Below are positions 5,967-61,791 of a stretch of DNA of 64,000 bases, piece after piece (positions within the stretch are counted from its first letter, which is position 1; each line of letters begins with the position of its first letter). The DNA lies in contig NC_091286.1 in the NCBI RefSeq assembly GCF_032444005.1, forward strand, positions 487,692,001 through 487,756,000, written 5' to 3'. This DNA comes from Ranitomeya imitator (lineage: Eukaryota). Both the position numbers and the translations under genes were made by a program. Below the pieces are notes generated by a model that was given only the letters and a program-made list of their open reading frames with translations, was not told the origin of the DNA and did not search any database.

Positions 5967-6385
5967 TAGTGTTGAGCATTCCGATACCGCAAGTACCGAG
6001 TTCCGATATTTTTGAGATATCGGGAATCGGTATCGGGATTAAGATTCATGTGTAAAATAAAGAATAAAAATAAAAAATATTGATATACTTACCCTCGGAC
6101 GTGCCCTGGTTGTCACCGCTGCAACCGCCATGCTTCCGTTCCTAAGAATGAGCGCGTTAAGGACTTTCGATGACATCGCGGCTTGTGATTGGTCGCTGAG
6201 CGGTCACATGAGTTTCCTCTCCTTCATACCCTGGGAACCATAGAAGATACCTTCCGATATTTGTGTCCCATTGACTTGTATTGGTATCGGATATCGGTAT
6301 CGGCGATATCCGATATTTTTCGGATATCGGCCGATACCATCCGATACCGATATTTAAAAGTATCGGACGGTATCGCTCAACACTA
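5967..6385. mobile_element. hAT-type MITE nested in the piggyBac-like element
   Basis: TIR TAGTGTTGAGC/GCTCAACACTA, 8-bp TSD GTTATAAG (5959-5966, 6386-6393). Shorter relative of 19018-20351. Confidence 0.9.
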
Positions 6386-6659
6386 GTTATAAGGGTTAAA
6401 ATTTCACCAGCAATTTCTCATTTTTACAACATCATTTTTTTAGGGACTACATCTCATTTGAAGTCATTTTAAGGGGTCTATATGATAGAAAATAACCAAG
6501 TGTGACACCATTCTAAAAACTGCACCCCTCAAGGTGCTCAAAACCACATTCAAGAAGTTTATTAACCCTTCATGTATTTCACAGGAATTTTTGGAATGTT
6601 TAAATAAAATTGAACATTTAACTTTTTTTCACAAAAAATTTATTCAGCTCCAATTTGTT

Positions 6660-7950
6660 TTTTTTACCAAGGGTAACAGGAGAAAATGGACCCCAAAAGT
6701 TGTTGTACAATTTGTCGTGAGTACGCTGATACCCCATATGTGGGGGTAAACCACTGTTTGGGCGCATGACAGAGCTCGGAAGCGAAGGAGTGCCATTTGA
6801 CTTTTCAATGCAAAATTGGCTGGGATTGAGATGGGGCGCCATGTTGCGCATGGAGAGCCCCTGATGTGCCTAAGCATTGAAACCCCCCACAAATGACACC
6901 ATATTGGAAAATAGACCCGCTATGGAACTTATCTAGATGTGTGGTGAGCACTTTGACCCACCAATAGCTTCACAAAAGTTTATAATGCAGAGCCGTAAAA
7001 ATAATAAATCATATTTTTTTACAAAAATGATTTTTTCGTACCCAATTTTTTTATTTTCCCAAGGGTAAGAGAAGAAATTGGACCCCCAAAGATGTTGTAC
7101 AATTTGTCCTGAGTACGCTTATACCCCATATATGGGGGTAAACCCCTGTTTGGGTGCATGGGAGAGCTCGGAAGGGAAGGAGCGCCGTTTGACTTTTCCA
7201 TGCAAAATTGACAGGAATTGAGATGGGACGCCATGTAGCGTTTGGAGAGCCACTGATGTGCTTAAACATTGAAACCCCCCACTAGTGACACCATTTTGGA
7301 AATTAGACCCCCTAAGGAACTTATCTAGATGTGCGCTGAGCACTTTGACCCACTAAGGGCTTCACAGAAGTTTATAATGCAGAGCCGTAAAAGTAAAAAA
7401 TCTTTTTTTCCCACAAAAATTATTTTTTAGCCCCCAGTTTTGTATTTTCCCAAGGGTAACAGGAGAAATTGGATGCAAAAGTTGTTGTCCAATTTGTCCT
7501 GAGTAGGTTGATACCCCATATATGGGGGGGAATCACCGTTTGGGCGCATGGGACAGCTCGGAAGGGAAGGAGCGCCATTTGGAATGCAGAATTAGATGGA
7601 ATTGTCTGCAGGCGTCACATTGCATTTGCAGAGCCCCTAATGTAACTAAACAGTAGAAACCCCCCACAAGTGACCCCATATTGGAAACTAGACCCCCAAA
7701 AAACTTATGTAGATGTGTTGTGAGAACTTTGAACCCCCAGTTTCACTACAGTTTATAACACAGCCGTGAAAATAAAAAAATCTTTTTTTTTTTTACAAAA
7801 ATTATTTTTTAACCCCTTTTTGGGCACACGGGAGAGCTCGGAAGGGAAGGAGCACTGTTTTACTTTTTCAACGCAGAATTGGCTGGAATTGAGATCGGAC
7901 GCCATGTCGCGTTTGGAGAGCCCCTGATGTGCCTAAACAGTAGAAACCCC
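6660..7950. repeat. About 390-bp tandem repeat (roughly 3.3 units) inside the piggyBac-like element
   Basis: The block ...GATACCCCATAT...GAGCTCGGAAGGGAAGGAGC recurs at about 390-bp spacing. It is the reverse complement of the array at 51545-54960. Confidence 0.8.
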
Positions 7951-7965
7951 CCAATTATAACTGAA

Positions 7966-8246
7966 ACCCTAATCCAAACACACCCCTAACCCTAATCCCA
8001 AAGGTAACACTAACCACACCTCTAACCCTGACACACCCCTAACCTTAATCCAAACCCTATTCCCAACCGTAAATGTAATCCAAACTCTAACCCTAACTTT
8101 AGCTCCAACCATAACCCTAACTTTAGCCCCAACCCTAACTGTAGCCTTAACCCTAGCCCCAACCCTAACTCTAGCCCTAACCCTAGCCCTAACCCTAGCC
8201 CTAAACCTAACCCTAGCCCTAACCCTAACCCTAACCCTAGTCCTAA
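7966..8246. repeat. Telomere-like (CCCTAA/CCCTAG)n tract
   Basis: Degenerate to near-perfect CCCTAA and CCCTAG hexamers. Confidence 0.9.
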
Positions 8247-9941: not shown

Positions 9942-10775
9942 GGCTGGTTTCACATTTGCGTTTTTTGCCGCTGCGTTTAAAAAAACGCATGCATTTTTTT
10001 TCCTATACTTAACATTAAAAATGCATGCGTTTTTTTGCATGCGTTTTGCTCCTTTTTGCAGCCGCATGCGTCTTTTCTATGCATGCGTTGTGTTGCAGAA
10101 ATGCGACATGTAGTAATTTTTAGCGGCGTCTTTTGCTGCAAAAAAAGCATGCTTTTTTTGCGGAAAAAAAACCTATTGCTGTCTATGTAAACGCATGCGT
10201 TTTTAAGCAAATGCATTTGGTTGCATTAAAAAAGCATGCATTTTTATAGAAAAAAAACATTAAACACACTGATATGCCACCCCCCACCATAAAGGTGATA
10301 AAGGGATCCTAATCCTAACCCTAAAGGGATCCTAACCCTAACCCTAAAGGGATCCTAACCCTAACCCTATCCCTAACCCTAAACCTAGGGATCCTAACCC
10401 TACCCCTAACCCTAACCCTACCCCTAACCCTAACCCTAAGGGTTAGGGTTAGGATCCCTAGGGTTAGGGTTAGGGTTAGGGTTAGGTTTAGGATCCCTTT
10501 AGGGTTAGGGTTAGGGCTAGTATCCCTACCCCTAACCCTAGCTATTGCTGTTTATAGTGGGGTTTTTACTTGATTTTGATGATTGGCAGCTGTCACACAC
10601 TTCTCATCATGCGTTTAAAAAGCGCAAATGCATGAAAAAATGCATGTAAACGCGTCAAAACGCCGCATATTTTTCACCACATGCAAAAACGCATGCGTCT
10701 AAAAAACACAGCGTTTGCACGCGTTTACATGCGTTTTTTCACCATGCGTTTTAAAACGCAAGTGTGAAACCAGCC
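9942..10775. mobile_element. PIF/Harbinger-type MITE
   Basis: TIR GGCTGGTTTCACA/TGTGAAACCAGCC, 3-bp TSD TAA on both sides. Confidence 0.85.
10308..10541. repeat. Inverted telomere-like tract (CCCTAA)n then (TTAGGG)n inside the MITE
   Basis: The C-rich tract switches to G-rich at CCCTAAGGG (about 10437). It is punctuated by GGATCC. Confidence 0.9.
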
Positions 10776-10939
10776 TAAATTAACATTTCTAGAACATGTA
10801 GTCCAATTGACTGAATCCCGAGTCATTAGTATAAACCAGACTAAAATTAAACATAATATTAAAATTGTTTAAACATAAAAAAACAAACAATTTCCCTCTA
10901 AAATTCCATTTAGACAACCTGTTTACTTCTTTAGAGTGA

Positions 10940-11167
10940 AAGATTATTAACTAAAAGACCTTATCTCTGACAACATTTTTCCATGTTAATGATTTTTCAC
11001 ATTCATTTTACAGATATATTACCACTAACTGATTATCTAGCACATTTGGCCACAAAGAATCAGCAAATAGCCTCGGGAGTATAAAAGCACATCTCTCCAA
11101 GTGTAAAGTTCTCTTCATTTGGTTGAGCAGCTGAAGAGAAGGGAAAACACAGCTTGGCACAGTAAGG
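10940..11167 (+). promoter_or_regulatory. Candidate TATA promoter plus short non-coding first exon
   Basis: HNF1-like sites (10940-10951, GTTAATGATT at 10985), GATA TTATCT (10961, 11033), TATAAAAG (11080-11087), donor-like ACA|GTAAGG at 11161/11162. Motif-based only. Confidence 0.35.
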
Positions 11168-17123: not shown

Positions 17124-17419
17124 TTAATGTGCCCTACGTGAACTTGGTGGCAACCTGTACCAAACGGGTGGCATGCAGCCAGGGGCACAAGGCCAGAAAG
17201 CACTTATGGCATTGTTAGCTGTACTTTAAATAAAATAATATATACTTGAGCTGTATTAGCACTAGGCCAAGCTCACATGAGTGTGAAGAAAGACCTATTT
17301 TTTATTACAAGGTGGAAAGCAACAGTTTCCTACAAGCTAATGTTTGTATATATATATACTAGCTATTGAACCCGTTCTATGCCCGGGTGGCGAGCATTTA
17401 TATTGGTATATGGTCTCCA

Positions 17420-17740
17420 TCCTGGTATGTGCTGCTCCATCCTGCGTCCCCATCCTGTCATGTGCTGCACCCATCCTGCGTCCCCATCCTGTCATGTGCT
17501 GCTCCATCCTGCACCCCCATCCTGTCATGTGCTGCTTTATCCTGTGTCCCCATCCTGTCATGTGCTGCTCCCATTCTGCACTCCCATTCTGTCATGTGCT
17601 GCACCCATCCTGCGCCCCCATCCTGTCATGTGCTGCACCCATCCTGCGTCCCCATCCTGTCATGTGCTGCTCCCATCCTGGGCCTCCATTCTGACATGTG
17701 CTGCTCTCATCCTACGCCACCATTCTTTAATTTGCTGCTC
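17420..17740. repeat. About 34-bp minisatellite (CATCCTGCGTCCCCATCCTGTCATGTGCTGCTCC)
   Basis: About 8-9 tandem imperfect units. Confidence 0.85.
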
Positions 17741-17744
17741 CCAT

Positions 17745-18615
17745 CCATATGCCCCATACGCTGCTCCATAAAGGTTTATGGCCCCCATAAGATGCTCCAT
17801 AGTATATGCACCGTACACTGCTCCATAAAGGTTGATGGCCCCCATAAGATGCTCCATAGTATATGTCCCCGTACGCTGTTCCATAAAGGTTTATGGCCCC
17901 CATAAGATGCTCCATGGTGTATGCCCCCATACACTGCTCCATTATGGTTTATGGCCCCCATGAGATGCTCCATGGTATATGCCCCCATACACTGCTCCAT
18001 TATGGTTTATGTCCCCATAAGATGCTCCATTGTATATGCCCCCGTACACTGCTCCATTATGGTTTATGGCCCCATAAGATGCTCCATTGTATATGCCCCC
18101 GTACACTACTCCATTATGGTTTATGGCCCCATAAGATGGTCCATTGTATATGCCCCCGTACACTGCTCCATTATGGTTTATGGCCCCCATAAGATGCTCC
18201 ATTGTATATGTCCCCGTACACTGCTCCATTATGGTTTATGGCCCCATAAGATGCTCCATGGTATATGCCCCCGTACACTGCTCCATTATGGTTTATGGCC
18301 CCATAAGATGCTCCATTGTATATGCCCCGTACACTGCTCCATTATGGTTTATGGCCCCATAAGATGCTCCATTGTATATGCCCCTGTACACTACTCCATT
18401 ATGGTTTATGGCCCCATAAGACGCTCCAGTGTGTATGCCCCCGTACACTGCTCCATTATGGTTTATGGCCCCCATAAGATGCTCCATAGTGTATGCCCCC
18501 GTACACTGCTCCATTATGGTTGATGGCCCCCATAAGACGCTCCAGTGTGTATGCCCCCGTACACTGCTCCATTATGGTTTATGGCCCCATAAGATGCTCT
18601 ATGGTATATGCCCTG
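17745..18615. repeat. About 58-bp minisatellite (TATATGCCCCCGTACACTGCTCCATTATGGTTTATGGCCCCATAAGATGCTCCATTG)
   Basis: About 15 tandem units; accounts for the repetitive ORFs in the track. Confidence 0.9.
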
Positions 18616-19017
18616 TATTCTGCTGCAATATATGAAAAAAAAAAATACCATACTCACCTATCGTCGCTGGGCGCCGAGTGCTGGGGGGCCTGAGCAGGCG
18701 GGGACACCGGCGCGCTGTGGGGGTCAGGTGCCGGTATCGCTGCTAGTTCAGGCCCCCCAGCACTTGCTATATTCACCTGGCCCCATTCCACCGCTGCGCG
18801 CCGCCATCTTCCGGGTCCTCTGGCTGTGACTGGTCAGTCAGAGGGCGGCGCGCATTAAGCGTGTCATCACGCCCTCTGAACTGAACGTCACAGGCAGAGG
18901 ACCCGGAAGATGGCAGCGCGCAGCGGTGGAACGGGGCCAGGTGAATATAGCCGATACTTACCCTCTTGGCGGTCCCTGCTTCTCTGTTGGAGATCGCGGT
19001 GTGCATTCAGTGTTTAC

Positions 19018-20351
19018 TAGTGTTGAGCATTCCGATACCGCAAGTATCGGGTATCGGCCGATACTTGCGGTATCGGAATTCCGATACCGAGATCCGATAC
19101 TTTTGTGGTATCGGGTATCGGTATCGGATACATAGAGATGTGTAAAATAAAGAATTAAAATAAAAAATATTGATATATTTACCTCTCCGGTGGCCCCTGG
19201 ACTCAGCGCGGGTAACCGGCAGGCTTCGTTGTTCAAAATCAGCGCTTTTAGGACCTGAGAATCACGTCCCGGCTTCTGATTGGTCGCGGGCCGCCCATGT
19301 GACCGCCACGCGACCAATCACAAGCCGCGACGTCACCGCAAGCTATTAGCGCGCTCATTTTTGAAAAATGAGCGCGTTAATGACTTTCAAAGACGTAGCA
19401 GCTTGTGATTGGTCGCGGCCACGCGACCAATCACAAGCCGCGACGTCACCGCAAGCTATTAACGCGCTCATTTTTAAAAATGAGCGCGTTAATGGCTTTC
19501 AAAGACGTAGCGGCTTGTGATTGGTCGCGTGGCCGCGACCAATCACAAGCCGCGACGTCACCGCAAGCTATTAACGCGCTCATTTTTGAAAAATGAGCGC
19601 GTTAATGACTTTCAAAGACGTAGCGGCTTGTGATTGGTCGCGGCCACGCGACCAATCACAAGCCGCTACGTCTTTGAAAGCCATTAACGCACTCATTTTT
19701 AAAAATGAGCGCGTTAATAGCTTGCGGTGACGTCGCGGCTTGTGATTGGTCGCGTGGCCGCGACCAATCACAAGCCGCTACGTCTTTGAAAGCCATTAAC
19801 GCGCTCATTTTTAAAAATGAGCGCGTTAATAGCTTGCGGTGACGTCGCGGCTTGTGATTGGTCGCGGCCACGCGACCAATCACAAGCCGCTACGTCTTTG
19901 AAAGCCATTAACGCGCTCATTTTTAAAAATGAGCGCGTTAATAGCTTGCGGTGACGTCGCGGCTTGTGATTGGTCGCGTGGCGGTCACATGGGCGGCCCG
20001 CGACCAATCAGAAGCCGGGACGTGATTCTCAGGTCCTAAAAGCGCTGATTTTGAACAAAGAAGCCTGCCGGTTACCCGCGCTGAGTTCAGGGGCCGCCGG
20101 AGAGGTAAATATATCAATATTTTTTATTTTAATTCTTTATTTTACACATCCCTATGGATCCCAGGGCCTGAAGGAGAGTTTCCTCTCCTTCAGACCCTGG
20201 GAACCATGAGAATACCTTCCGATACTTGATGTCCCATTGACTTGTATTGGTATCGGATATCGGTATCGGCGATATCCGATATTTTTCGGGTATCGGCCGA
20301 TACTATCCGATACCGATACTTTCAAGTATCGGACGGTATCGCTCAACACTA
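19018..20351. mobile_element. hAT-type fold-back MITE
   Basis: TIR TAGTGTTGAGC/GCTCAACACTA, 8-bp TSD GTGTTTAC (19010-19017, 20352-20359). Interior 19135-20148 is a near-perfect inverted repeat. Confidence 0.92.
19309..19978. repeat. Six 112-113-bp palindromic units, three forward and three reversed
   Basis: Units start at 19309, 19422, 19534, 19647, 19759 and 19871. Each begins CGCGACCAATCACAAGCCGC, ends in the reverse complement of that, and is centred on GCGCTCATTTTT(G/-)AAAAATGAGCGC. Confidence 0.92.
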
Positions 20352-20458
20352 GTGTTTACGCATACCGCGATCTCCTGGGAGCGTCACTCTCTGGGGGCCA
20401 GACTGCGCCGGCTCTTACGCAGTCTATAAAGGCTTCGGACAGAGTGACGCTCCCAGCG

Positions 20459-20460
<2 letters not shown>

Positions 20461-30189: not shown

Positions 30190-30773
30190 GTGGGCTGTGG
30201 AAGATAATACTGTGTGGTGGACATAATATTGTGTTGGGGAAGATGTGGGGATCATATTATTGAGGTCATCATTCTGTGATGGAGGGCTGTGGTGATTATA
30301 CTGTGTTGGTGGTGCAGGGGGTCATCATATTTTGCTGAATGGCAGTGTGGGTCATATTTTGGGGGTCATCATTGTGTAGGGTCATGATACTGTGGGTCAT
30401 AATGTGGGTGATCATTCAGCATTAGGGACTTTAGGGACCATTAAATTGTTTATAGATGACTGTAGAGCCATCATACTGTTTGAAGACAGTGGTGGCTATC
30501 ATAATGTATTAGGGCTATGGAGGTTCACACTGTGAGGGTCATCATTCTGTATGTAGGGAGCTATATGGAATCATACTGCATAGGTTTTAAAATTCTGTGT
30601 GCGAGATCATATTTTTTGGAAGTCTGTGATAGCCATAATACTAGGTTAGAGATCATACTGTGGGGTGGATTGTGTGAGCAATTAAACTTTGTGGAAGCCA
30701 TTATACTGTATGTAGTCATATTTTTGGGGGACTGTGGAGGAATAAACTGTGTGCAAGGCTGTAGGAGCAATTA
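30190..30773. repeat. Degenerate CATCATACTGTG/GGG low-complexity repeat, continuing at 32380-32470
   Basis: Recurrent (G)TCATCAT..TGTG motifs on both sides of the Tc1 insertion. Confidence 0.5.
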
Positions 30774-32379
30774 CAGTGGGGCAAAAAAGTATTTAGTCAG
30801 TCAGCAATAGTGCAAGTTCCACCACTTAAAAAGATGAGAGGCGTCTGTAATTTACATCATAGGTAGACCTCAACTATGGGAGACAAACTGAGAAAAAAAA
30901 TCCAGAAAATCACATTGTCTGTTTTTTTAACATTTTATTTGCATATTATGGTGGAAAATAAGTATTTGGTCAGAAACAAAATTTCATCTCAATACTTTGT
31001 AATATATCCTTTGTTGGCAATGACAGAGGTCAAACATTTTCTGTAAGTCTTCACAAGGTTGCCACACACTGTTGTTAGTATGTTGGCCCATTCCTCCATG
31101 CAGATCTCCTCTAGAGCAGTGATGTTTTTGGCTTTTCGCTTGGCAACACGGACTTTCAACTCCCTCCAAAGGTTTTCTATAGGGTTGAGATCTGGAGACT
31201 GGCTAGGCCACTCCAGGACCTTGAAATGCTTCTTACGAAGCCACTCCTTCATTGCCCTGGCGGTGTGCTTTGGATCACTGTCATGTTGAAATACCCAGCC
31301 ACGTTTCATCTTCAATGCCCTTGCTGATGGAAGGAGGTTTGCACTCAAAATCTCATGATACATGGCCCCATTCATTCTTTCATGTACCCGGATCAGTCGT
31401 CCTGGCCCCTTTGCAGAGAAACAGCCCCAAAGCATGATGTTTCCACCACCATGCTTTACAGTAGGTATGGTGTTTGATGGATGCAACTCAGTATTCTTTT
31501 TCCTCCAAACACAACAAGTTGTGTTTCTACCAAACAGTTCCAGTTTGGTTTCATCAGACTATAGGACATTCTCCCAAAACTCCTCTGGATCATCCAAATA
31601 CTCTCTAGCAAACTTCAGACGGGCCCGGACATGTACTGGCTTAAGCAGTGGGACACGTCTGGCACTGCAGGATCTGAGTCCATGGTGGCGTAGTGTGTTA
31701 CTTATGGTAGGCCTTGTTACATTGGTCCCAGCTCTCTGCAGTTCATTCACTAGGTCCCCCCGCGTGGTTCTGGGATTTTTGCTTACCGTTCTTGTGATCA
31801 TTCTGACCCCACGGAGTGGGATTTTGCGTGGAGCCCCAGATCAAGGGAGATTATCAGTGGTCTTGTATGTCTTCCATTTTCTAATTATTGCTCCCACTGT
31901 TGATTTCTTCACTCCAAGCTGGTTGGCTATTGCAGATTCAGTCTTCCCAGCCTGGTGCAGGGCTACAATTTTGTTTCTGGTGTCCTTTGACAGGTCTTTG
32001 GTCTTCACCATAGTGGAGTTTGGAGTCAGACTGTTTGAGGGTGTGCACAGGTGTCTTTTTATACTGATAACAAGTTTAAACAGGTGCCATTACTACAGGT
32101 AATGAGTGGAGGAAAGAGGAGACTCTTAAAGAAGAAGTTACAGGTCTGTGAGAGCCAGAAATCTTGATTGTTTGTTTCTGACCAAATACTTATTTTCCAC
32201 CATAATATGCAAATAAAATGTTAAAAAAACAGACAATGTGATTTTCTGGATTTTTTTTTTCTCAGTTTGTCTCCCATAGTTGACGTCTACCTATGATGTA
32301 AATTACAGACGCCTCTCATCTTTTTAAGTGGTGGAACTTGCACTATTGCTGACTGACTAAATACTTTTTTGCCTCACTG
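30774..32379 (-). mobile_element. Full-length Tc1 (DD34E) transposon, copy 1
   Basis: TA flanks. About 200-bp TIRs beginning CAGTGGGGCAAAAAAG. Near-identical to 58962-60565. Confidence 0.97.
30989..32011 (-). pseudogene. Tc1 transposase (340 codons) with nonsense mutations R57* and W151*
   Basis: ATG at 32011. In-frame TGA (31841-31843) and TAG (31559-31561). Motifs [20 protein letters not shown]. Confidence 0.95.
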
Positions 32380-32469
32380 TATATTGAGTTGGGGGGCTGT
32401 TGGTGCATCATACTGTGTATGAGGGCTATGGAATCCACTGTACTGTGTGCGGAGCTGTGGGACTATCAT

Positions 32470-33500: not shown

Positions 33501-34224
33501 AGGTACTGTCACACTAGACGATATCGCTAGCGATCCGTGACGTTGCAGCGTCCTCGCTAGCGATATCGTCCAGTGTGACAGGCAGCAGCGATCAGGCCCC
33601 TGCTGGGAGATCGCTGGTCGGGGAAGAAAGTCCAGAACTTTATTTCGTCGCTGGACTCCCCGTAGACATCGCTGAATCGGCGTGTGTGACACCGATTCAG
33701 CGATGTCTTTGCTGGTAACCAGGGTAAACATCGGGTAACTAAGCGCAGGGCCGCGCTTAGTAACCCGATGTTTACCCTGGTTACCATCCTAAAAGTAAAA
33801 AAACAAACACTACATACTTACCTACCGCTGTCTGTCCTCCAGCGCTGTGCTCTGCACTCCTCCTGCTCTGGCTGTGAGCGTCGGTCAGCCGGAAAGCAGA
33901 GTGGTGACGTCACCGCTCTGCTTTCTGGCTGCCCGGCGCTCACAGCCAGACCAGAGAAGCAGAGCGCCGAGGACAGACAGCAGAAGGTAAGTATGTAGCG
34001 TTTGTTTTTTTACTTTTTAGGATGGTAACCAGGGTAAACATCGGGTTACTAAGCGCGGCCCTGCGCTTAGTTACCCGATGTTTACCCTGGTTACCGGGGA
34101 CCTCGGGATCGTTGGTCGCTGGAGAGCTGTCTGTGTGACAGGTCTCCAGCGACCAAACAGCGACGCTGCAGCGATCCGGATCGTTGTCGGTATCGCTGCA
34201 GCGTCGCTATGTGTGACGGTACCT
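33501..34224. mobile_element. PIF/Harbinger-type MITE
   Basis: TIR AGGTAC(T/C)GTCACAC, TSD TAA on both sides, largely palindromic interior. Confidence 0.9.
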
Positions 34225-34249: not shown

Positions 34250-35268
34250 GCATCTCCATCTTCAGGAGCAATCTGGGGGACAGGGATAGACTAAAGAGCC
34301 CCTAGTTCTAGTTACCTGGTTAGCACCCACAGTCCCAAGGCAATGCATGACACCCTGCTGACGAAAAGCATCCGCACAGCATGATGCTGCCACTATCTTG
34401 GTTGATGATGTGGCTGATGTTTTCAGGGATGTTTCATTTAGCCTAAAGAGTTCTACTTTTGTCTCATTTGAAAAGAGCACTTTCTTCCACATTCTAGCTG
34501 TGTCCCCTACATGCAAACTGCAAATGGAACTTCTTATGGCTTGATTTAAAAAATTACTTTCTTTTTGCCACTCCTCCATAAAGGCCACATTTATGGAATA
34601 TACAATTGATAGTTGTCCTGTGAACAGATTTTTCCCATCAGAGCTGTGGATCTCTGCATCTCCTCCAGAGTGGCCAGGGGATGTCAGTTTTAGGTGGATG
34701 GCAATGCTGTGGTAGATTGGCAGTTGTGATATACTCTTTCCATGTTTGGATATTAGATTGGACAGTGCTTCATGAGATGTTCAGAGCCTGAGCTATTTTT
34801 TAATAACCTAACCCTGTTTAGCATTCTCCACTACTTTTTAGGGCTTGTTTCCACATGCGAGAAACACGTCCGTGCCTCGCATGTGGAAACGAAGTTCTGG
34901 CCCGGCACTCCGGAGTGGAGCGTGCGGCTGCATGTGTTGCTATGCGGCCGCACGATCTGCTCCGGAGTGCCGGCGCCAGAACTTCATTTCCACATGCGAG
35001 ACACGGACGTGTTTCTCGCATGTGGAAACAAGCCCTTACCCTGATCTGTCTGGTGAAGCTATACTGAGAATAAATTACACACAGGTGGACTCAATTTACT
35101 AATTATGTGACTTCTGAAGGCAATTGTTCAAAGGGGGTACCAGAGTAGAGGGGGCTGAATACAAATGCACAGTTAGTTAGAAAACTATGCATCATTTCCT
35201 ATACACTCCAAAAACACATTTAAGTTTCTGGGTAGAACATAAATGTTGAATACTTTTTCAAGGCACTG
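34250..35268 (-). mobile_element. Old Tc1 remnant with nested MITE
   Basis: Tc1-like antisense coding remnant. Terminus GAATACTTTTTCAAGGCACTG|TA. Confidence 0.7.
34841..35035. mobile_element. 195-bp palindromic Harbinger-type MITE
   Basis: GGGCTTGTTTCCACATGCGAGAAACACGTCCGTG and its reverse complement at the other end. TSD TTA on both sides. Confidence 0.92.
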
Positions 35269-43607: not shown

Positions 43608-44431
43608 GGCTATGTGCACACGTTGCAGATTATTTTTTTTCATGGCGAAAATGCATACACAAAACAACCCATTGAATTCAATGGGATTCCGTAATGCTGT
43701 GCTAATGCTGCGTATTTTTCCGCGGCAGAATCGCATCATGGAAAAATACGCAGCATATTCATTCTTTGTGCGGAATCACGGTGATTCTGCACAGATAAGA
43801 GTGCATTGATCTGCTTACTTCCCACATGGGGCCAAGCCCACAATGCACAAAGTAAGCAGATCATGTGCCCTAAAAAAGAATTAAAATAAAAAATAGTTAT
43901 ATACTCACCTTCTGGCGACCCCCGGATCTAGACCAGGCCTTAGCAATGCTTCCGGCAGCTCCCGTTCCCGGTAATGCCTTGCGACAATGATCTGTGATGA
44001 CATAGCGGTCTCGCATGATGCTATTTCATCTGAGGTCATTGTCGTGAGGTATCACTGGAAACGAAAGCTGTTGGGAGCATTGTGAGGATCGGGAAGGCTG
44101 TGGGGGCCGCCGGAAGGTGAGAATATAAAAAAAAAATTTAATTATTTTTAACATTATATCTCTTTACCACATCAATAGTAAAAAGTTGGTTACACTTGTC
44201 AAACACTATGTTTGACAAGTGTGACCAATCTGTCAATCATTTTTCCAAGCGATGCTACAGATCGAATAGGAAAACGCTAGCATTCTGCAAGCTAATTACA
44301 CTTTCAAAACGCTAATGTTTAGCAGGAATATGCGTGCCCGTGCCAATTCCGCATGCGTTTTACCCGCTACAAGGAGTTGCAGAATTGCCACGGAAATTGC
44401 TGCAGCAATTCAGCAACGTGTGCACATAGCC
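43608..44431. mobile_element. PIF/Harbinger-type MITE
   Basis: Perfect TIR GGCTATGTGCACACGTTGC; flanks TTA/TTT. Confidence 0.85.
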
Positions 44432-45750: not shown

Positions 45751-46573
45751 TATTTTTCATTTTTACATAATAAATCAGAAATAGAGGGGAAATATTTATT
45801 CTGTTTATATATAATTTGTATCAATTTACGAGATTTATCTTTGATTTTTTCACTTTGATATGCCATCCCTCACAGGCTGACATTCTGTTAGGTCTTAATA
45901 GGTGTTTAAATATGGCAGATTTGTGGCCCACTGTTAGACTCCTTTAGGATATAGCAACCCATCGGCATAGTGAGAGCAGATTTTTTATTTAAGTGGTCAA
46001 TGGGTTGATGGAGAGAGTCTAGTCCTGTGATTAGCAATGACAGTGGCATCACATGATAGAATAGATATCTGAGCTTGAACTTATCTTTAATCACGGCCAT
46101 TACAGAATTTGGGATTGTTAACAAATGTAACGCACTGTCCATCCCAGTTTACAACTAACAAAGTAGTAATAAACTATTTATTCCCCAAAAATGAGCTTCT
46201 TGCAGATCCCTCTGAAAATAACAAATACGTAAAATCCAACATGCTCATATTATTTCCTCATTCTCTGATGTCAAGAAACTCCCATGCACATTTGATTTTT
46301 AGTTTGTCTAACAAAAAATGTTGAATTGTTTGAATAACTTCTCGAGTATGGGATAAAAAATGAACAATCTTTGATGCTGCTTACAAAGGGCTTACAACAA
46401 CTGCCTGAATCCAATCGAAGCATGAATTGATGAGCATTACCATAAAAGAGAAAGAGTTATCAATATTAAACAAAAAAGATATACAGTATATATTGGTACG
46501 ATTTTAGACAGTAGATAGAAAAATATTTAGAATTGAGAGTCCTCAGTGGTTGATACCTTTTAATGGCTAACTG

Positions 46574-46722
46574 TAGGGTTGAGCGACCTTGACTTTTTTA
46601 GGGTCGAGCCGGGTTTCGCGAAACCCGACTATCTCAAAAGTCGAGTCGAGTGAAATCGGCCGATTATGGCGAAAAGTCGACCGAAACACGAAACCCAATG
46701 CAAAGGCAATGGGATTTTTTTT

Positions 46723-46769
<47 letters not shown>

Positions 46770-47063
46770 CGTCCGTCCCTGAACTGAAAAACTGGTGTTA
46801 CACAGTGCAAATCGCTACAGCGCACAAGCGACAACATGGCGATAGGCGTCCACGCCCCTAAGACCTATGTCATCACTCTGCCCACGCCCCTTCATTGGCT
46901 GAAAAAAATGGCGCCAAGCGCGTCATACGAAACGCGACTTTGGCGCGAAAGTCGCGTACCGCATGGCCGACCCCACACAGGGATCGGGTCGGGTTTCATG
47001 AAACCCGACTTTGCCAAAAGTCGGCGACTTTTGAAAATGAACGATCCGTTTCGCTCAACCCTA
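46574..47063. mobile_element. hAT-type MITE with internal (CT)n
   Basis: TIR TAGGGTTGAGCG/CGCTCAACCCTA, 8-bp TSD GCTAACTG (46566-46573, 47064-47071). Confidence 0.92.
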
Positions 47064-47088
47064 GCTAACTGAAAAGATGGTAACAAAT

Positions 47089-47127
47089 TGCAACCTTTCG
47101 AGACTACTCAGGTCTCTTCATCAGGCA
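47089..47127 (-). ncRNA. Minimal hammerhead ribozyme motif, stem III mutated
   Basis: Minus strand reads TGC CTGATGA A GAGAC CTGAGTA GTCTC GAA AGGT T GCA. Confidence 0.55.
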
Positions 47128-47189
47128 TAGACTAAAAGAAATTCTGAATAAATATAAATATGTGATTCTTCAGATTTTGTATTAGTCTA

Positions 47190-47228
47190 TGCCTGATGAA
47201 GAGACCTGTGTAGTCTCGAAAGCTTGCA
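47190..47228 (+). ncRNA. Minimal type I hammerhead ribozyme motif
   Basis: TGC CTGATGA A GAGAC-CTGTGTA-GTCTC GAA AGCT T GCA: core boxes, 5-bp stem II, palindromic AGCT stem III, 3-bp stem I. Confidence 0.65.
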
Positions 47229-47334
47229 ATTTGTTACCATCTTTTCACTTAGCCTTTAAAAGGTATCAACCACTGAGGACTCTCAATATTAAACAGTAAG
47301 TTTTTGTGTTGTCATAATGCATTGAGTCTCTTAA

Positions 47335-47721: not shown

Positions 47722-47733
47722 TTAAATATCCAC

Positions 47734-48398: not shown

Positions 48399-48525
48399 AT
48401 GGGGAAGAAAAGGAAATTTAGTTTTTTGGAGATTATTCTAATTGTGCTTTTTATTATGATGACAATAATATCAGTTGCTTTTGTTGCCCTTTTTGCAACA
48501 GGACAACCAGGACTCAAATCAGCAG
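48399..48525 (+). CDS. SI: Sucrase-isomaltase / maltase-glucoamylase family gene, first coding exon (cytoplasmic tail + signal-anchor)
   Basis: Acceptor TTTTCTTTTTCCTTTACAG is followed directly by ATG. Translation MGKKRKFSFLEIILIVLFIMMTIISVAFVALFATGQPGLKSA, phase-1 donor AG|GTAAAA. Matches the recalled SI N-terminus (MARKKFSGLEISLIVLF...) and exon layout. An MGAM paralog is not excluded. Confidence 0.88.
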
Positions 48526-48964
48526 GTAAAAAACACTAATTAATTGCATGAACAATCCTTAACATCGTATAATAATGAAGCGTGATGAGTCTGTCTTCAC
48601 TTTTAGCTGATGCATAACAAGCAGATACATTGAATATATTTATTTTAACCTATGGCTTCAACTTGTTTGCATAATTATTTTTCCCAGATGTAGATTTACA
48701 TGATCATTTTTAATCATTTTGGTTCCCCCATGCTAAGTTTGTGGTTTAAATAAGGTAGAGAATCTCTCCCTGTTTCACTTTCTTGATGTGATTAAGTAAA
48801 TAAATTAGTAGCTCAGAGGATAGATCTCTTATCTCTTGATACACTTTCCTTCATAACTATAACCTTTCTGAAAGTAGATTTCTTTGGAAGCTTAGAAACG
48901 TGTAAACTTAAATAATAAAAAAAGATCTAATGGTTCCTATTTCTTTGAAATGTTTTGCTTTTAG

Positions 48965-50310: not shown

Positions 50311-50579
50311 CCACCGTATCATACTTACCGATCCTGCCGGGGTCCGTCCGTCTTCTCCCCGGGCGCCGCCATCTTCCAAAATGGCGGGCGCATGCGCAGT
50401 GCGCCCGCCGAATCTGCCGGCCGGCAGATTCGTTCCAAAGTGCATTTTGATCACTGAGATATAATCTATCTCAGTGATCAAAATAAAAAAAATAATAAAT
50501 GACCCCCCCCCCTTTGTCACCCCTATAGGTAGGGACAATAAAAAAATAAAGAAATTTTTTTTTTCCACTAATGTTAGAA

Positions 50580-50670
50580 TAGGGTTAGGGTTAGGGTTAG
50601 GGGTAGGGTTAGGGGTAGGGTTAGGGGTAGGGTTAGGGTTAGGGTTAGGGGTAGGGTTAGGGGTAGGGCT
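50580..50670. repeat. Telomere-like (TTAGGG/GTAGGG)n tract, continuing at 51370-51520
   Basis: Directly visible; split by nested Harbinger MITEs. Confidence 0.9.
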
Positions 50671-50672
50671 TC

Positions 50673-51015
50673 GGTATGTGCACACGTATTCTGGTCCTCT
50701 GCGGATTTTTCCGCTGCGGATTTGATAAATCCGCAGTGCTAAACCGCTGCGGATTTATGGCGGATTTACCGCGTTTTTTTCTGCGCATTTCACTGCGGTT
50801 TTACAATTGCGATTTTCTTTTGGAGCAGTTGTAAAACCGCTGCTGAATCCGCACAAAGAAGTGACATGCTGCGGAATGTAAACCGCTGCGTTTCCGTGCA
50901 GTTTTTCTGCAGCATGTGTACAGCGTTTTTTGTTTCCCGTAGGTTTACATTGAACTGTAAACTCATGGGAAACTGCTGCGGATCCGCAGCGTTTTCCGCA
51001 GCGTGTGCACATACC
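50673..51015. mobile_element. Harbinger-type MITE
   Basis: GGTATGTGCACACG/CGTGTGCACATACC TIR. TSD imperfect. Confidence 0.75.
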
Positions 51016-51025
51016 TTTAGAATTA

Positions 51026-51369
51026 GGCCATGTGCACACGGTGCAGATTTGGCTGCGGATTCGCAGCAGTGTTCCGTCAGGTTTACAGTACCATGTAAAC
51101 ATTTGAAAAACCAAATCCGCTGTGCCCATGGTGCGGAAAATACCGCGCGGAAACGCTGCGTTGTATTTTCCGCAGCATGTCAATTCTTTGTGCGGATTCC
51201 GCAGCGTTTTACACCTGTTCCTCAATAGGAATCCGCAGGTGAAATCCGCACAAAAAATACTGGAAAACCGCGGAAAATCCGCAGGTAAAACGCAGTGCCT
51301 TTTACCCGCGTATTTTTCAAAAATGATGCTGAAAAATCTCACACGAATCCGCAACGTGGGCACATAGCC
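51026..51369. mobile_element. Harbinger-type MITE
   Basis: GGC(C/T)ATGTGC(A/C)CACG termini, TTA on both sides. Confidence 0.8.
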
Positions 51370-51544
51370 TTAGGGTTAGGGGTGGAATTAGGGTTGTGGT
51401 TAGGGGTGTGATTAGGGTTATGGCTACAGTTGGGATTAGGGTTAGGGGTGTGTTAGGGTTAGGGTTGTGATTAGGGTTATGGCTACAGTTGGGATTAGGG
51501 TTAGGGGTGTGGGGGGGTTAGTGTTGGAGTTAGAATTGAGGGGT

Positions 51545-54500
51545 TTCCACTGTTTAGGCACATCAGGGGGTCTCCAAACGCAACATGGCGCCACCATTGA
51601 TTCCAGCCAATCTCGTATTCAAAAAGTCAAATGGTGCTCCCTCAATTCCGAGCCCTGACGTGTGCCCAAACAGTGGTTTACCCCCACATATGTGATACCA
51701 GCATACTCAGGATAAACTGCGCAACAATTACTGGGGTCCAGTTTCTCCTGTTACCCTTGTGAAAATAAAGAAATGCTTGCTAAAACATCATTTTTGAGGA
51801 AAGAAAAATGATTTTTTATTTTCACGGCTCTGCGTTGTAAACATCTGTGAAGCACTTGGGGGTTCAAAGTGCTCACCACATATCTAGATAAGTTCCTTGG
51901 GGGGTCTAGTTTCTAAAATGGGGTCACTTCTGGGGGGTTTCTACTGTTTAGGCACACCAGGGGGTCTCCAAACGCAACATGGCGCCACCATTGATTCCAG
52001 CCAATCTCGTATTCAAAAAGTCAAATGGTGCTCCCTCAATTCCGAGCCCTGACGTGTGCCCAAACAGTGGTTTACCCCCACATATGGGGTACCAGCATAC
52101 TCAGGATAAACTGCGCAACAATTACTGGGGTCCAGTTTCTCCTGTTACCCTTGTGAAAATAAAGAAATGCTTGCTAAAACATCATTTTTGAGGAAAGAAA
52201 AATGATTTTTTATTTTCACGGCTCTGCGTTGTAAACGTCTGTGAAGCACTTGGGGGTTCAAAGTGCTCACCACATATCTAGATAAGTTCCTTGGGGGGTC
52301 TAGTTTCTAAAATGGGGTCACTTGTGGGGGGTTTCTACTGTTTAGGCACACCAGGGGGTCTCCAAACGCAACATGGCGCCACCATTGATTCCAGCCAATC
52401 TCGTATTCAAAAAGTCAAATGGTGCTCCCTCAATTCCGAGCCCTGACGTGTGCCCAAACAGTGGTTTACCCCCACATATGGGGTACCAGCATACTCAGGA
52501 TAAACTGCGCAACAATTACTGGGGTCCAGTTTCTCCTGTTACCCTTGTGAAAATAAAGAAATGCTTGCTAAAACATCATTTTTGAGGAAAGAAAAATGAT
52601 TTTTTATTTTCACGGCTCTGCGTTGTAAACGTCTGTGAAGCACTTGGGGGTTCAAAGTGCTCACCACATATCTAGATAAGTTCCTTAGGGGATCTAGTTT
52701 CTAAAATGGGGTCACTTGTGGGGGTTTCTACTGTTTAGGCACACCAGGGGCTCTGCAAATGCAACGTGACACCCGCAGACCATTCCATCAAAGTCTGCAT
52801 TTCAAAAGTCACTACTTCCCTTCTGAGCCCCGATGTGTGCCCAAACAGTGGTTTACCCCCACACATGGGGTATCAGCGTACTCAGGAGAAACTGGACAAC
52901 AACTTTTGGGGTCCAATTTCTCCTGTAACCCTTGGAAAAATAAAAAATTCTGGGCTAAATAATTATTTTTGAGGAAAGAAAACGTATTTATTATTTTCAC
53001 GGCTCTGCATTATAAACTTCTGTGAAGCACTTGGGGGTTCAAAGTGCTCACCACACATCTAGATAAGTTCCTTTCGGGGTCTAGTTTCCAAAATGGGGTC
53101 ACTTGTGGGGGGTTTCTACTGTTAAGCCACATCAGGGGCTCTGCAAACGCAACGTGACGCCCACAGAGCATTCCATCAAAGTCTGCATTTCAAAACGTCA
53201 CTACTTCACTTCCGAGCCCCGGCATGTGCCCAAACAGTGGTTTACCCCCACATATGGGGTATCAGCGTACTCAGGAGAAACTGGACAACGACTTTTGGGG
53301 TCAAATTTCTCCTGTTACCCTTTGGAAAATAAAAAATTGCAGGCTAAAAGATCATTTTTGAAAAAATAATTTTTTTTTTTTATTTTCATGGCTCTGCGTT
53401 ATAAACTTCTGTGAAGCACTTGGGGGTTCAAAGTCCTCACCACACATCTAGATTAGTTCCTTTGGGGGTCTAGTTTCCAAAATGGGGTCATTTCTGGGGG
53501 ATCTCCAATGTTTAGGCACACAGGGGCTCTCCAAACGTGACATGGTGTCCGCTAATGATTGGAGCTAATTTTCCATTTAAAAAGCCAAATGGCGTGCCAT
53601 CCCTTCCGAGCCCTGCCGTGCGCCCAAACAGTGGTTTACCCCCACATATGGGGTATCAGCGTACTCAGGACAAACTGGACAACAATATTTGGGGTCCAAT
53701 TTCTCCGATTATCCTTGGCAAAATAGGAAATTCCAGGCTAAAAAATCATTTTTGAGGAAAGAAAAATTATTTTTTATTTTCATGGCTCTGCGTTATAAAC
53801 TTCTGTGAAGCACCTGGGGGTTTAAAGTGCTCAATATGCATCTAGATAAGTTCCTTGGGGGGTCTAGTTTCCAAAATGGGGTCACTTGTGGGGGAGCTCC
53901 AATGCATAGGCACACAGGGGCTCTCCAAACGCGACATGGTGTCCGCTAACAATTGGAGCTAATTTTCCATTCAAAAAGTCAAATGGCGCGCCTTCCCTTC
54001 CGAGCCCTGCCGTGTGCCCAAACAGTGGTTTACCCCCACATATGAGGTATCGGCGTACTCGGGAGAAATTGCCCAACAAATTTTATGATCCATTTTATCC
54101 TACTGCCCATGTGAAAATGAAAAAATTGAGGCGAAAAAAAAATTTTTGTGAAAAAAAAGTACTTTTTCATTTTTACAGATCAATTTGTGAAGCACCTGAG
54201 GGTTTAAAGTGCTCACTAGGCATCTAAATAAGTTCCTTGGGGGGTCTAGTTTCCAAAATGGGGTCACTTGTGGGGGAGCGCCAATGTTTAGGCACACAGG
54301 AGCTCTCCAAACGCGACATGGTGTCCGCTAACGATGGAAATAATTTTTCATTCAAAAAGTCAAATGGCGCTCCTTCCCTTCCGAGCCTTGCCATGTGCCC
54401 AAACAGTGGTTTACCCCCACATATGAGGTATCGGCATACTCAGGAGAAATTGCCCAACACATTTTAGGATCCATTTTATCCTGTTGCCCATGTGAAAATG

Positions 54501-54960
54501 AAAAAATTGAGGCTAAAAAAATTTTTTGTGAAAAAAAAGTACTTTTTCATTTTTACGGATCAATTTGTGAAGCACCTAGGGGTTCAAAGTGCTCACTATG
54601 CATCTAGATAAGTTCCTTGGGGCGTCTAGTTTCCAAAATGGGGTCACTTGTGGGGGAGCTCCAATTTTTAGGCACACTGGGGCTCTCCAAACGTGACATG
54701 GTGTCCGCTAAAGAGTGGAGCCAATTTTTGATTCAAAAAGTCAAATGGCGCTCCTTCCCTTCCAAGCCCTGCCGTGCGCCCAAACAGTGGTTTACCCCCA
54801 CATATGAGGTATCAGCGTACTCAGGACAAATTGGACAACAACATTCGTGGTTCAGTTTCTCCTTTTACCATTGGGAAAATAAAAAAATTGTTGCTAAAAG
54901 ATAATTTTTGTGACTAAAAAGTTAAATGTTCATTTTTTCCTTCCATGTTGCTTCTGCTGC
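51545..54960. repeat. About 394-bp tandem array (about 9 units)
   Basis: Identical 70-aa spurious ORFs at 51979 and 52373 (offset 394). The first three units are near-identical and later units diverge. Confidence 0.9.

Positions 54961-58922: not shown

Positions 58923-58925
<3 letters not shown>

Positions 58926-58961
<36 letters not shown>
58926..58961. repeat. (TA)n microsatellite at the Tc1 insertion site
   Basis: Directly visible. Confidence 0.95.
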
Positions 58962-58964
<3 letters not shown>

Positions 58965-60565
58965 TGGGGCAAAAAAGTATTTAATCAGTCAGCAATAGTG
59001 CAAGTTCCACCACTTAAAAAGATGAGAGGCGTCTGTAATTTACATCATAGGTAGACCTCAACTATGGGAGACAAACTGAGAAAAAAAATCCAGAAAATCA
59101 CATTGTCTGTTTTTTTATCATTTTTTTTTCATATTATGGTGGAAAATAAGTATTTGGTCAGAAACAAACAATCAAGATTTCTGGCTCTCACAGACCTGTA
59201 ACTTCTTCTTTAAGGATCTCCTCTTTCCTCCACTCATTACCTGTAGTAATGGCACCTGTTTAAACTTGTTATCAGTATAAAAAGACACCTGTGCACACCC
59301 TCAAACAGTCTGACTCCAAACTCCACTATGGTGAAGACCAAAGAGCTGTCAAAGGACACCAGAAACAAAATTGTAGCCCTGCACCAGGCTGGGAAGACTG
59401 AATCTGCAATAGCCAACCAGCTTTGAGTAAAGAAATCAACAGTGGGAGCAATAATTAGAAAATAGAAGACATACAAGACCACTGATAATCTCCCTCGATC
59501 TGGGGCTCCACGCAAAATCCCACCCCGTGGGGTCAGAATGATCACAAGAACGGTGAGCAAAAATCCCAGAACCACGCGGGGGGACCTAGTGAATGAACTG
59601 CAGAGAGCTGGGACCAATGTAACAAGGCCTACCATAAGTAACACACTATGCCACCATGGACTCAGATCCTGCAGTGCCAGACGTGTCCCACTGCTTAAGC
59701 CAGTACATGTCCGGGCCCGTCTGAAGTTTGCTAGAGAGCATTTGGATGATCCAGAGGAGTTTTGGGAGAATGTCCTATGGTCTGATGAAACCAAACTGGA
59801 ACTGTTTGGTAGAAACATAACTTGTCGTGTTTGGAGGAAAAAGAATACTGAGTTGCATCCATCAAACACCATACCTACTGTAAAGCATGGTGGTGGAAAC
59901 ATCATGCTTTGGGGCTGTTTCTCTGCAAAGGGGCCAGGACGACTGATCCGGGTACATGAAAGAATGAATGGGGCCATGTATCGTGAGATTTTGAGTGCAA
60001 ACCTCCTTCCATCAGCAAGGGCATTGAAGATGAAACATGGCTGGGTCTTTCAACATGACAATGATCCAAAGCACACCGCCAGGGCAACGAAGGAGTGGCT
60101 TCGTAAGAAGCATTTCAAGGTCCTGGAGTGGCCTAGCCAGTCTCCAGATCTCAACCCTGTAGAAAACCTTTGGAGGGAGTTGAAAGTCCGTGTTGCCAAG
60201 CGAAAAGCCAAAAACATCACTGCTCTAGAGGAGATCTGCATGGAGGAATGGGCCAACATACCAACAACAGTGTGTGGCAACCTTGTGAAGACTTACAGAA
60301 AACGTTTGACCTCTGTCATTGCCAACAAAGGATATATTACAAAGTATTGAGATGAAATTTTGTTTCTGACCAAATACTTATTTTCCACCATAATATGCAA
60401 ATAAAATGTTAAAAAACAGACAATGTGATTTTCTGGATTTTTTTTTCTCAGTTTGTCTCCCATAGTTGAGGTCTACCTATGATGTAAATTACAGACGCCT
60501 CTCATCTTTTTAAGTGGTGGAACTTGCACTATTGCTGACTGACTAAATACTTTTTTGCCCCACTG
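58962..60565 (+). mobile_element. Full-length Tc1 (DD34E) transposon, copy 2
   Basis: TA flanks, long TIRs CAGTGGGGCAAAAAAG/CTTTTTTGCCCCACTG. Confidence 0.97.
59328..60350 (+). pseudogene. Tc1 transposase (340 codons) with nonsense mutations G33* and W46*
   Basis: ATG at 59328, TGA at 59424, TAG at 59463. The remaining frame is open, with SDETK and D-34-E spacing (HDNDPKH...NPVE). Confidence 0.95.
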
Positions 60566-61791
60566 TATATATAAACTATTCAGACTGTCAAAGAGGAAAT
60601 ATGCACTATAAAAGCTACTAAGCTGCTTGAATGTTTACAAAAATACAGAATCTGGATCTTATGGATTTTTTGTAAGTTGCTCAGTGTGAATTCGGCAAAA
60701 TGGTGGCCAACTGAAACACCATCCTGCTGAACAATAGAGAGCTGGCAAAAGATAACAATGAAAAAACATACTCACCTTGCCAATCTCCTTTCTGGATGCC
60801 CCTGCTGCTTCATGCCCACTGTCTGGTCCTACGCGTCTCTGTTGCGCCACATATCTGGTCCAATGTTCACTGTACACCTTGGCTTCTGGCTATAAGTAGG
60901 CTCCAAAGTTCATTGCGCATGCACCGAGGTGTACTTATGGCTGGTGGCCACTGCTCAAAGTGAACATTGTGGCTCAGACAATCAGCATGCTGGTGTTAGG
61001 GTGGACTGAACAACAGACAGGGAGCAGTGGGAGCAGTCAGAAAGGTGAGCCATGGTATCATTTTTTTAACCTTTTCCCGGGTCTCAAGTTTTTGTTTGTC
61101 CCTGCTACTCCCTGTGTGCTGTCGGTCTTGTGTTCACTCTAGGCTGAGTCTTCCAGCCACGAGCAGAACTGAGTGTTCACTGCGCATGGACAGTTAAACT
61201 TGGGACCTGCTAGTGACCTATATTTACCACCAGGCTGGAAATGCAGTAAACAGCGGGGGTGACCAAAGAGGTGACTATTGAAGAGAGTATGAGTTTTTCT
61301 TTTTTACATTTTACGAATATTGTGCTTCAGGATCTGTAGTGACTCCAGAACATAAAAGGGACGTTTCAATGGACTGAGAATAACTTTAGTGCAATTCAAA
61401 TTTCCCAGTAAAATCTGTGCAATTTGACTCATTCTATTGTGTTAGATCCACTCATCTCTAGTGAGAACCATTACTGTTTGATGCAGATGTGCATTATCTA
61501 CCAAGCAGTGTCTTTTTTCACCATACGGCCTATCCAATATTCTGTCAACCTAATTCCTCTGTTGCAATTATTTTCATATGATTGAAAGGTCACTGCGCTA
61601 AAGCAACTGGAAAAAAAGGAAGAACATTTTATCTAATGAGAGAGATAATACCTGTTTTTACAGAGGTACCTACAGGACCATTACTATATTGCCCTTAATG
61701 CTCAATGGGTTAAGTACTGTTACAAATGAACACTGTTAATATAACTCACCATTTGGAGTATATGTATGAAGGTTACTGATACATAACAATA

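Follow-up and report, generated by a model that had tools for sequence, protein, structure and literature searches.

Capture of a promoter by a DNA transposon has been documented in bats. The non-autonomous Helitron HelibatN3 captured the promoter, six codons and the splice donor of NUBPL and acts as an exon trap, and amplification of the promoters of 15 genes has left 4,690 copies in the bat's genome (PMC4778049; PMC4224331 is a further reference on the bat case). In this report, we analyze a 64,000-nucleotide stretch of the Ranitomeya imitator genome (assembly GCF_032444005.1, contig NC_091286.1, positions 487,692,001 to 487,756,000 of the forward strand; hereafter "the window"), in which CpG-rich segments ending in a strong 5' splice site (donor) are found inside non-autonomous DNA transposons. 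These cassettes are best read as a variant of the known promoter-capture phenomenon. They are set apart by being usually palindromic and two-sided, and by their occurrence in miniature inverted-repeat transposable elements (MITEs) of the hAT and Harbinger superfamilies. We found no description of a palindromic, two-sided cassette common to hAT and Harbinger MITEs in the full-text literature, in a limited library whose silence is not proof of novelty.

The cassettes resemble HelibatN3, their nearest precedent, in that a non-autonomous DNA transposon bears a promoter-like CpG segment, an apparent short first exon and a strong donor aimed toward the flanking DNA. Further, an ATG is sometimes present in a word resembling a YY1 site, and two of the donors (at 18650 and 18954) are sense to a Helitron-like element. 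The differences are also clear. In contrast to the bat case, the cassette here is usually palindromic, with donors on both strands; it resides in hAT and Harbinger MITEs, with at least one module common to both; its donors are an extended complement of U1 small nuclear RNA (snRNA); and it is known from sequence alone.

Three other systems invite comparison. In Pack-MULE, Pack-CACTA and Turmoil-1 elements (transduplication), cut-and-paste transposons gain internal cargo while their termini remain unchanged, and members with and without cargo are found, as they are here. Pack cargo comprises assorted gene fragments, mostly coding exons, whereas the cargo in this window is consistently a 5'-end-like cassette with one RNA signal. 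A second parallel lies in the axis between U1 and polyadenylation signals (PAS) that governs promoter directionality, and in the engineered gene-trap and activation transposons that carry promoter-plus-splice-donor cassettes. The module common to the hAT and Harbinger elements has a U1 site without PAS in the outward direction and PAS hexamers in the inward direction, a layout like that of an activation-tagging cassette; in contrast to the latter, it is natural and symmetric on both strands, and its activity is putative. Introners are likewise MITE-like DNA transposons with splice signals, but their donor and acceptor excise the element, whereas outward donors allow no removal as an intron. 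Classification as introners was rejected for these elements: the donors aim outward from the center, they have no conserved acceptor partner, and the layout does not provide for excision of the whole element.

Enrichment and orientation of the U1-complement word

The 5' end of U1 snRNA is AUACUUACC, and the word GGTRAGTAT pairs with all of U1 positions 1-9. The minus-strand reading of the word, ATACTTACC, is identical to the first nine bases of U1 snRNA. A preliminary description of this DNA had proposed that unrelated transposons of four superfamilies share a promoter-like core bounded by near-consensus, outward-facing donors. Every motif that it listed is present on the strand it named and no more than a few bases from the position it gave, and its expectation that donor-like motifs would exceed dinucleotide-shuffled controls was borne out. 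In 100 such shuffles of the window, 0.81 occurrences of GGTRAGTAT were expected (standard deviation 0.85, maximum 3); 10 are observed. (Local scripts covered the full window; Rfam and TRF searches covered positions 1-37700 and 37770-64000.) Merging palindrome arms and homologous modules reduces the exact 9-mer to about 8 independent contexts against the 0.81 expected, for an estimated Poisson probability of about 2e-6. The shuffles exclude a chance origin of the word. The AT extension follows GGTRAGT at 10 of the 16 window sites, which gives full pairing with the U1 5' end.

The donors are also oriented. With GT fixed, 26 sites match CAGGTAAGTAT at a minimum of 9 of 11 positions, whereas 200 local Markov simulations lead one to expect 12.0 and never gave more than 22. 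Eleven of these strong sites, not all independent of one another, have a CpG-rich upstream side (at least 7 CpG per 100 nt), a context that holds for 8% of all positions, and the mirrored arrangement, with the CpG-rich side downstream of the donor, is found at none of the 26. The excess of strong U1-type sites comprises those with a CpG-rich upstream 100 nt. When occurrences with similar flanks are merged, GGTAAGTAT ranks 13th among 951 tested 9-mers (about 40,000 in total). Each of the words above it is a terminal or subterminal repeat of a single transposon family, a description that GGTAAGTAT, alone among the top words, does not fit. The majority of GGTRAGTAT sites lie at the junction of a CpG-rich core and a T-rich tract, and the usual unit passes from a CpG-rich segment through a maximal 5' splice site into 25-40 nt of T-rich sequence. 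The oriented association of maximal U1-type donors with CpG-rich cores in non-autonomous elements is real and spans at least two verified superfamilies.

The families in question are the hAT type with TAGTGTTGAGC termini, two Harbinger types, a Helitron-like element and the TTAACCCCTT type. Their elements and donor sites are as follows, with terminal inverted repeats (TIRs) and target-site duplications (TSDs) where found and with a slash at the exon-intron boundary; "Harb1" and "Harb2" denote the two Harbinger-like MITEs.

5967-6385: hAT MITE copy 1; TIR TAGTGTTGAGC, TSD GTTATAAG at 5959-5966 and 6386-6393; one module arm kept
6085-6095, minus strand: U1-complement site AGG/GTAAGTAT; GGAAGCATGGCGG about 46 nt upstream, T-rich tract downstream
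17353-20440, minus strand: Helitron-like host element, ends uncertain; hairpin and CTAG near 17353; tandem arrays of 34 bp and 57 bp at 17417-18613
18650-18660, minus strand: U1-complement site TAG/GTGAGTAT; upstream side 73% GC with 10 CpG per 100 nt, T11 downstream
18766-18951, both strands: palindrome C, arms about 86% identical; in each arm AAGATGGC(A/G)GCGC, about 25 nt, and an outward CAG/GTGAATAT, the G of the GT being at 18776 (minus) and 18941 (plus)
18954-18964, minus strand: U1-complement site AGG/GTAAGTAT; adjoins palindrome C and aims into it
19018-20351: hAT MITE copy 2; TIR TAGTGTTGAGC, perfect 8-bp TSD GTGTTTAC; inner palindrome 19126-20161 with arms 96% identical; core a 112-bp tandem array with CCAAT and TGACGTC motifs
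19175-19185, minus strand: degraded donor GAG/GTAAATAT (GTAAAT), left arm of hAT copy 2
20102-20112, plus strand: degraded donor GAG/GTAAATAT (GTAAAT), right arm of hAT copy 2
33501-34224: Harb1; TIR AGGTACYGTCACAC, TSD TAA; inner palindrome 33714-34095 with arms 90% identical; cAMP response element (CRE) TGACGTCA at the dyad, 33905-33912
33814-33824, minus strand: U1-complement site TAG/GTAAGTAT, 10 of 11 positions; dyad 87 nt away, T-rich tract next
33984-33994, plus strand: U1-complement site AAG/GTAAGTAT, 10 of 11 positions; dyad 79 nt away, T-rich tract next
43608-44431: Harb2; TIR GGCTATGTGCACACG, TSD TTA/TTT
43861-44160: palindromic module of Harb2, arms about 70% identical; homologous to the hAT module
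43901-43911, minus strand, and 44114-44124, plus strand: Harb2 donors, AAG/GTGAGTAT and degraded AAG/GTGAGAAT (GTGAGA), respectively
50321-50400, minus strand: one-sided cassette within a TTAA-type element that starts at 49661; in order, NRF1 site GCGCATGCGC, YY1 site AAGATGGCGGC with ATG, about 35 nt, CG/GTAAGTAT, G-rich repeats
60740-61080: old unclassified palindrome, arms about 62% identical, CpG observed/expected ratio 0.29
60768-60778, minus strand, and 61042-61052, plus strand: donors of the old palindrome, AAG/GTGAGTAT and degraded AAG/GTGAGC, respectively

The claim of four superfamilies holds in part. The hAT class of 5967-6385 and 19018-20351 (8-bp TSDs) and the Harbinger-like class of 33501-34224 and 43608-44431 (3-bp TSDs) are confirmed, and for these the cassette lies, as in HelibatN3, inside a non-autonomous DNA transposon with termini and a TSD. 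The Helitron-like and TTAA-type hosts are plausible only: the former has a minus-strand hairpin with CTAG and a TA-rich target, and the label "piggyBac-like" for the latter is weakly based on TTAA and a TIR beginning with CCCC. Similarly, the near-consensus outward donors are enriched and oriented as a class, but those at 19175, 20102, 44114, 61042 and 9348 are degraded or weak (the last is GTAAGA with a GC-rich downstream side), and the donor at 18954 points into palindrome C rather than away from it. Decay is seen arm by arm, as GTAAAT, GTGAGA and GTGAGC.

In the palindromic elements, the donors lie about 80-135 nt from the dyad. Because the palindrome arises by duplication of one arm, the donors of one pair are copies of each other; the second follows automatically from the first, and each palindrome therefore counts as one observation.

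A module common to hAT and Harbinger MITEs

The arms of the hAT elements (6.0 kb and 19-20 kb) are homologous to those of Harb2 (43.9 kb) over about 150 bp, a stretch that begins about 100 nt before the donor and continues about 48 nt past it. The identity is 67%, with an E value of 1.7e-11 in the donor set and of 1e-9 in the whole window, and the consensus of the alignment includes ...CGGAAGCATGGCGG...GGGGCCGCCGGAAG/GTAAGTATATCAATATTTTTTATTTTAATTC... A relative of Harb2 at 51019-51371 (352 bp, TSD TTA) has termini that match Harb2 and is without the module. Relative to this element, Harb2 has about 570 bp of internal cargo; a module-free relative in the same window thus marks the cargo of Harb2 as an addition. 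The hAT termini do not accompany the insert. From the module-free relative and the insert free of hAT termini, it follows that the cargo moved between superfamilies or that both drew on a third source. The preliminary description had allowed for cores "acquired convergently or exchanged" among unrelated transposons. For the hAT/Harb2 pair, exchange is upheld, and neither "unrelated" nor "convergent" survives.

A profile of this module, searched with nhmmer, matched only its own five arms in the window. Shuffle-tested pairwise alignments of other modules gave weak hints of kinship, between hAT1 and palindrome C (z 4.5-6) and between palindrome C and the 50328 cassette (z about 3, largely through AAGATGGCGGC). 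The remaining modules would be either independent of one another or diverged past recognition.

The layout looks like that of a promoter-proximal first exon made bidirectional by fold-back. In three modules, an ATG lies within a YY1-like word 25-50 nt upstream of the donor: AAGATGGCGGC at 50375, AAGATGGC(A/G)GC in palindrome C, and GGAAGCATGGCGG in hAT copy 1. An ATG-bearing YY1-like word shortly upstream of the donor is also present in many housekeeping first exons. The hexamers AATAAA and ATTAAA are nearly absent from the sense strand in the 300 nt downstream of the donors, and in the hAT/Harbinger module the inward-reading strand has 1-4 of them, upstream of the donor.

A shorter unit was also considered. 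In Harb1 and in one arm of Harb2, the donor is followed by a pyrimidine tract and TAG/G, forming a unit of 33-39 nt (33821-33789, minus; 33987-34020, plus; 43908-43870, minus). A mini-intron was rejected as a general feature of the cassettes: the YAG is confined to these arms, their hAT homologues do not conserve it, and elsewhere the unit is sub-threshold.

Candidate first-exon cassettes and rival explanations

We tentatively propose that the cassettes are promoter- and first-exon-like cargo whose 5' splice site is real and has been under selection in transposon lineages; we put the probability of this reading at about 0.45. According to this proposal, the recurring unit would be internal cargo of non-autonomous DNA transposons, made up of a CpG-rich segment with GGTRAGTAT at its end and usually a U-rich tract beyond it, an anatomy that would correspond to a promoter-proximal first exon and the start of its intron. 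Inverted duplication (fold-back) of one such unit would yield the palindrome, with a donor at the end of each arm. As internal sequence, the cassette could be captured by another family or copied into it through template switching, with the termini left behind, and such movement would account for its presence in both hAT and Harbinger MITEs. In source copies, transcripts would start in the core and run outward, and selection would keep the 9-mer as a genuine U1/5' splice site; individual insertions would afterwards decay neutrally. The 9-mer is intact where the flanks are unalignable, which suggests selection on the word in the transposon lineages. The enrichment and orientation of the motif, the transposon termini, the homology of the hAT and Harbinger modules and the decay in copies are observed; promoter activity, donor use and selection at the level of the lineage are inferred.

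The window affords one comparison with a host gene. A gene resembling that for sucrase-isomaltase (SI-like) has its first coding exon at 48399-48526 on the plus strand (MGKKRKFSFLEIILIVLF...; acceptor ...cctttacag/), and its donor (48526/48527), the sole host donor identified in the window, is an ordinary CAG/GTAAAA. The AT-extended GGTRAGT of the cassettes against this ordinary donor, the oriented CpG context and the nearly PAS-free sense strand all argue for the proposed reading. So do the number of independent contexts, the regular distance of donors from the dyads, the ATG-bearing YY1-like words, the hAT/Harbinger homology with its module-free relative, the degraded donors of individual arms and the HelibatN3 precedent.

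Several observations weigh against it. Strong U1 sites are present in only 6 of 20 CpG-dense segments, and a strong donor is absent from the CpG-rich MITEs at 34840-35036 (197 bp, TSD TTA), 46574-47063 (hAT) and 50672-51372 (Harbinger). The set of housekeeping-promoter motifs that the preliminary description found in the cores turned out to be largely anecdotal: YY1-like words (4 against 2.2), the single CRE and CCAAT boxes (26 against 20, mostly in one tandem array) do not rise above shuffles. The NRF1 palindrome is the only transcription-factor motif that does, with 2 sites, one of which (32507) is outside any donor-bearing core. Of the arm mismatches in the three young palindromes, 30-50% are CpG-type transitions, albeit in small numbers, and the CpG observed/expected ratio is 0.8-1.6 in young cores and 0.29 in the oldest. 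Inserted copies therefore look germline-methylated rather than like maintained CpG islands. A non-coding MITE has no obvious need of a spliced transcript, and a 64-kb sample is too small for family consensus sequences. Finally, a sequencing-run search of Logan contigs returned no run on record as RNA that holds the element; some runs guessed to be RNA hold 47-71% of its sampled words, and two other organisms hold 64% and 29%.

The serious rival is passive capture. The 5' ends of host genes or of autonomous transposons may have been captured during gap repair and amplified without benefit or function, the donor merely being part of what was captured. The anatomy would be the same as under our proposal, and the two readings differ only on selection for the donor. 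Several facts fit such a relic: capture of a promoter, first exon and donor together is documented in bat Helitrons (PMC4778049); one Harbinger MITE occurs both with and without the module, which is additional cargo there; the donors of inserted copies decay; and the decay of CpG suggests methylated copies. Selection on the donor better accommodates two others. An A at +7 and a T at +8 are rare in ordinary host donors, and the window's only host donor is without them, yet they are present in about 8 of 9 CpG-context modules. Further, a 9-mer intact amid unalignable flanks is an improbable product of one neutral capture or of independent captures from random genes. We therefore consider a passive relic unlikely, while regarding it as the alternative that deserves the most weight.

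A more ambitious idea is that MITEs of multiple superfamilies exchange a selected "CpG-island mimic", in which a bidirectional promoter is paired with two short first exons bearing maximal U1 sites. U1 binding would promote productive outward transcription, and would keep the germline chromatin of the small element, TIRs included, open and poorly methylated, which would favor mobilization. Whenever a host transcript reads through, the palindrome would fold the donors away into a hairpin. When the center of Harb1 is folded as RNA, a near-perfect hairpin is predicted (-176 kcal/mol, z -22.8), with each donor paired to its own complement. We hold this elaboration to be improbable. If it is true, an RNA-processing signal would be an anti-silencing device of non-coding DNA transposons.

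The same hairpin bears on another possibility, that the U1 sites are a host-tolerance device. Suppression of premature cleavage and polyadenylation by U1 (telescripting) is established biology. U1 sites might suppress such cleavage arising from the AT-rich arms of elements inserted in introns, making carriers less harmful and allowing them to accumulate. Given the position of the SI-like first exon at 48399-48526, the elements from 49.6 kb onward sit in SI-like introns, and the presence of elements in or near such introns, together with AATAAA/ATTAAA in the arms of the hAT/Harbinger module, is in keeping with this notion. The placement of the hexamers is not. A transcript that crosses an element always meets the PAS-bearing arm first and the core with its donor only afterwards, and the arm past the donor is almost without PAS hexamers. 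The suggestion in the preliminary description of U1-mediated protection from premature termination, applied to the AT-rich arms, is at odds with this placement: in the hAT/Harbinger module, the hexamers come before the donor, on the strand that reads inward. Telescripting of the element's own arms was rejected for that reason. Moreover, read-through RNA would sequester the donor in the -176 kcal/mol hairpin, paired to its own complement, so that access by U1 would be poor, and a strong unpaired intronic donor would risk exonization. We judge host tolerance to be very unlikely.

The least probable explanation is that the word only resembles a donor and either works in the DNA itself, by binding a protein or through its structure, or descends from U1 snRNA or another RNA gene; or else that it is an artefact of chance or of reader selection: ATACTTACC does equal the first nine U1 bases and the initial examples were chosen by eye, but Rfam returned no U1 or other snRNA at E values up to 1, shuffles exclude chance, and the occurrence of one site per arm at the core edge, across different transposase superfamilies, speaks against a transposase-binding site. 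An origin from U1 snRNA itself was rejected, with no Rfam U1 match at the gathering score or at E values up to 1; the sub-threshold hairpin hits to "miRNA" families arise because the elements are palindromes.

Genomic setting and significance

The window has a GC content of 41%, a CpG observed/expected ratio of 0.53 and no runs of N, and it is crowded with repeats, including a chromovirus-type pol open reading frame (ORF), two Tc1 elements and many MITEs. The ORF, of 1018 amino acids at 84-3140 on the plus strand, has reverse transcriptase, RNase H, integrase and chromodomain regions and is a chromovirus-type Ty3/Gypsy pol that enters from the window's left edge. The Tc1-type elements at 30768-32386 and 58957-60567 are 1.6 kb long, inverted with respect to each other and 98% identical. 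Their TIRs span about 210 bp, their ORFs are of the DDE_3/HTH_Tnp_Tc3_2 type, and the two copies look recently active. Searches for further copies came back blank for the Harb1-core ORF (protein word search), in two metagenome pattern scans and for the Tc1 transposase ORF (exact look-up), and these look-ups pointed to no parental host gene.

The hAT MITE at 46574-47063 has the TIR TAGGGTTGAGCG and the 8-bp TSD GCTAACTG, and its CpG core contains CCAAT and AAAATGGCGCC words; it interrupts a palindrome with arms of about 190 bp (46533-47286). The TTAA-type elements have interstitial, telomere-like arrays of (TTAGGG/CCCTAA)n at 7965-8246, 10299-10527, 50577-50670 and 51388-51500. Of these, the array at 10.3-10.5 kb forms an inverted pair in its own right, and that at 50.6-51.5 kb is interrupted by an inserted Harbinger MITE. 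A tandem array with a 392-bp unit is present in two copies of a TTAA-type element (6650-7779 and 51537-54937).

If the cassettes are inactive, internal cargo exchange between transposon superfamilies would still have been demonstrated, and repeats rich in GGTRAGTAT would be a source of false splice-site and first-exon predictions in the annotation of this genome. If they are active, a giant vertebrate genome would contain mobile, bidirectional units of promoter plus donor by the tens of thousands, from which alternative first exons, chimeric transcripts and new transcription units could readily arise. The capture of promoters by Helitrons in a single orientation, as described in bats, would then have its extension in hAT and Harbinger MITEs, in a palindromic form that faces both ways, and a non-coding DNA transposon would have been selected for an RNA-processing signal.

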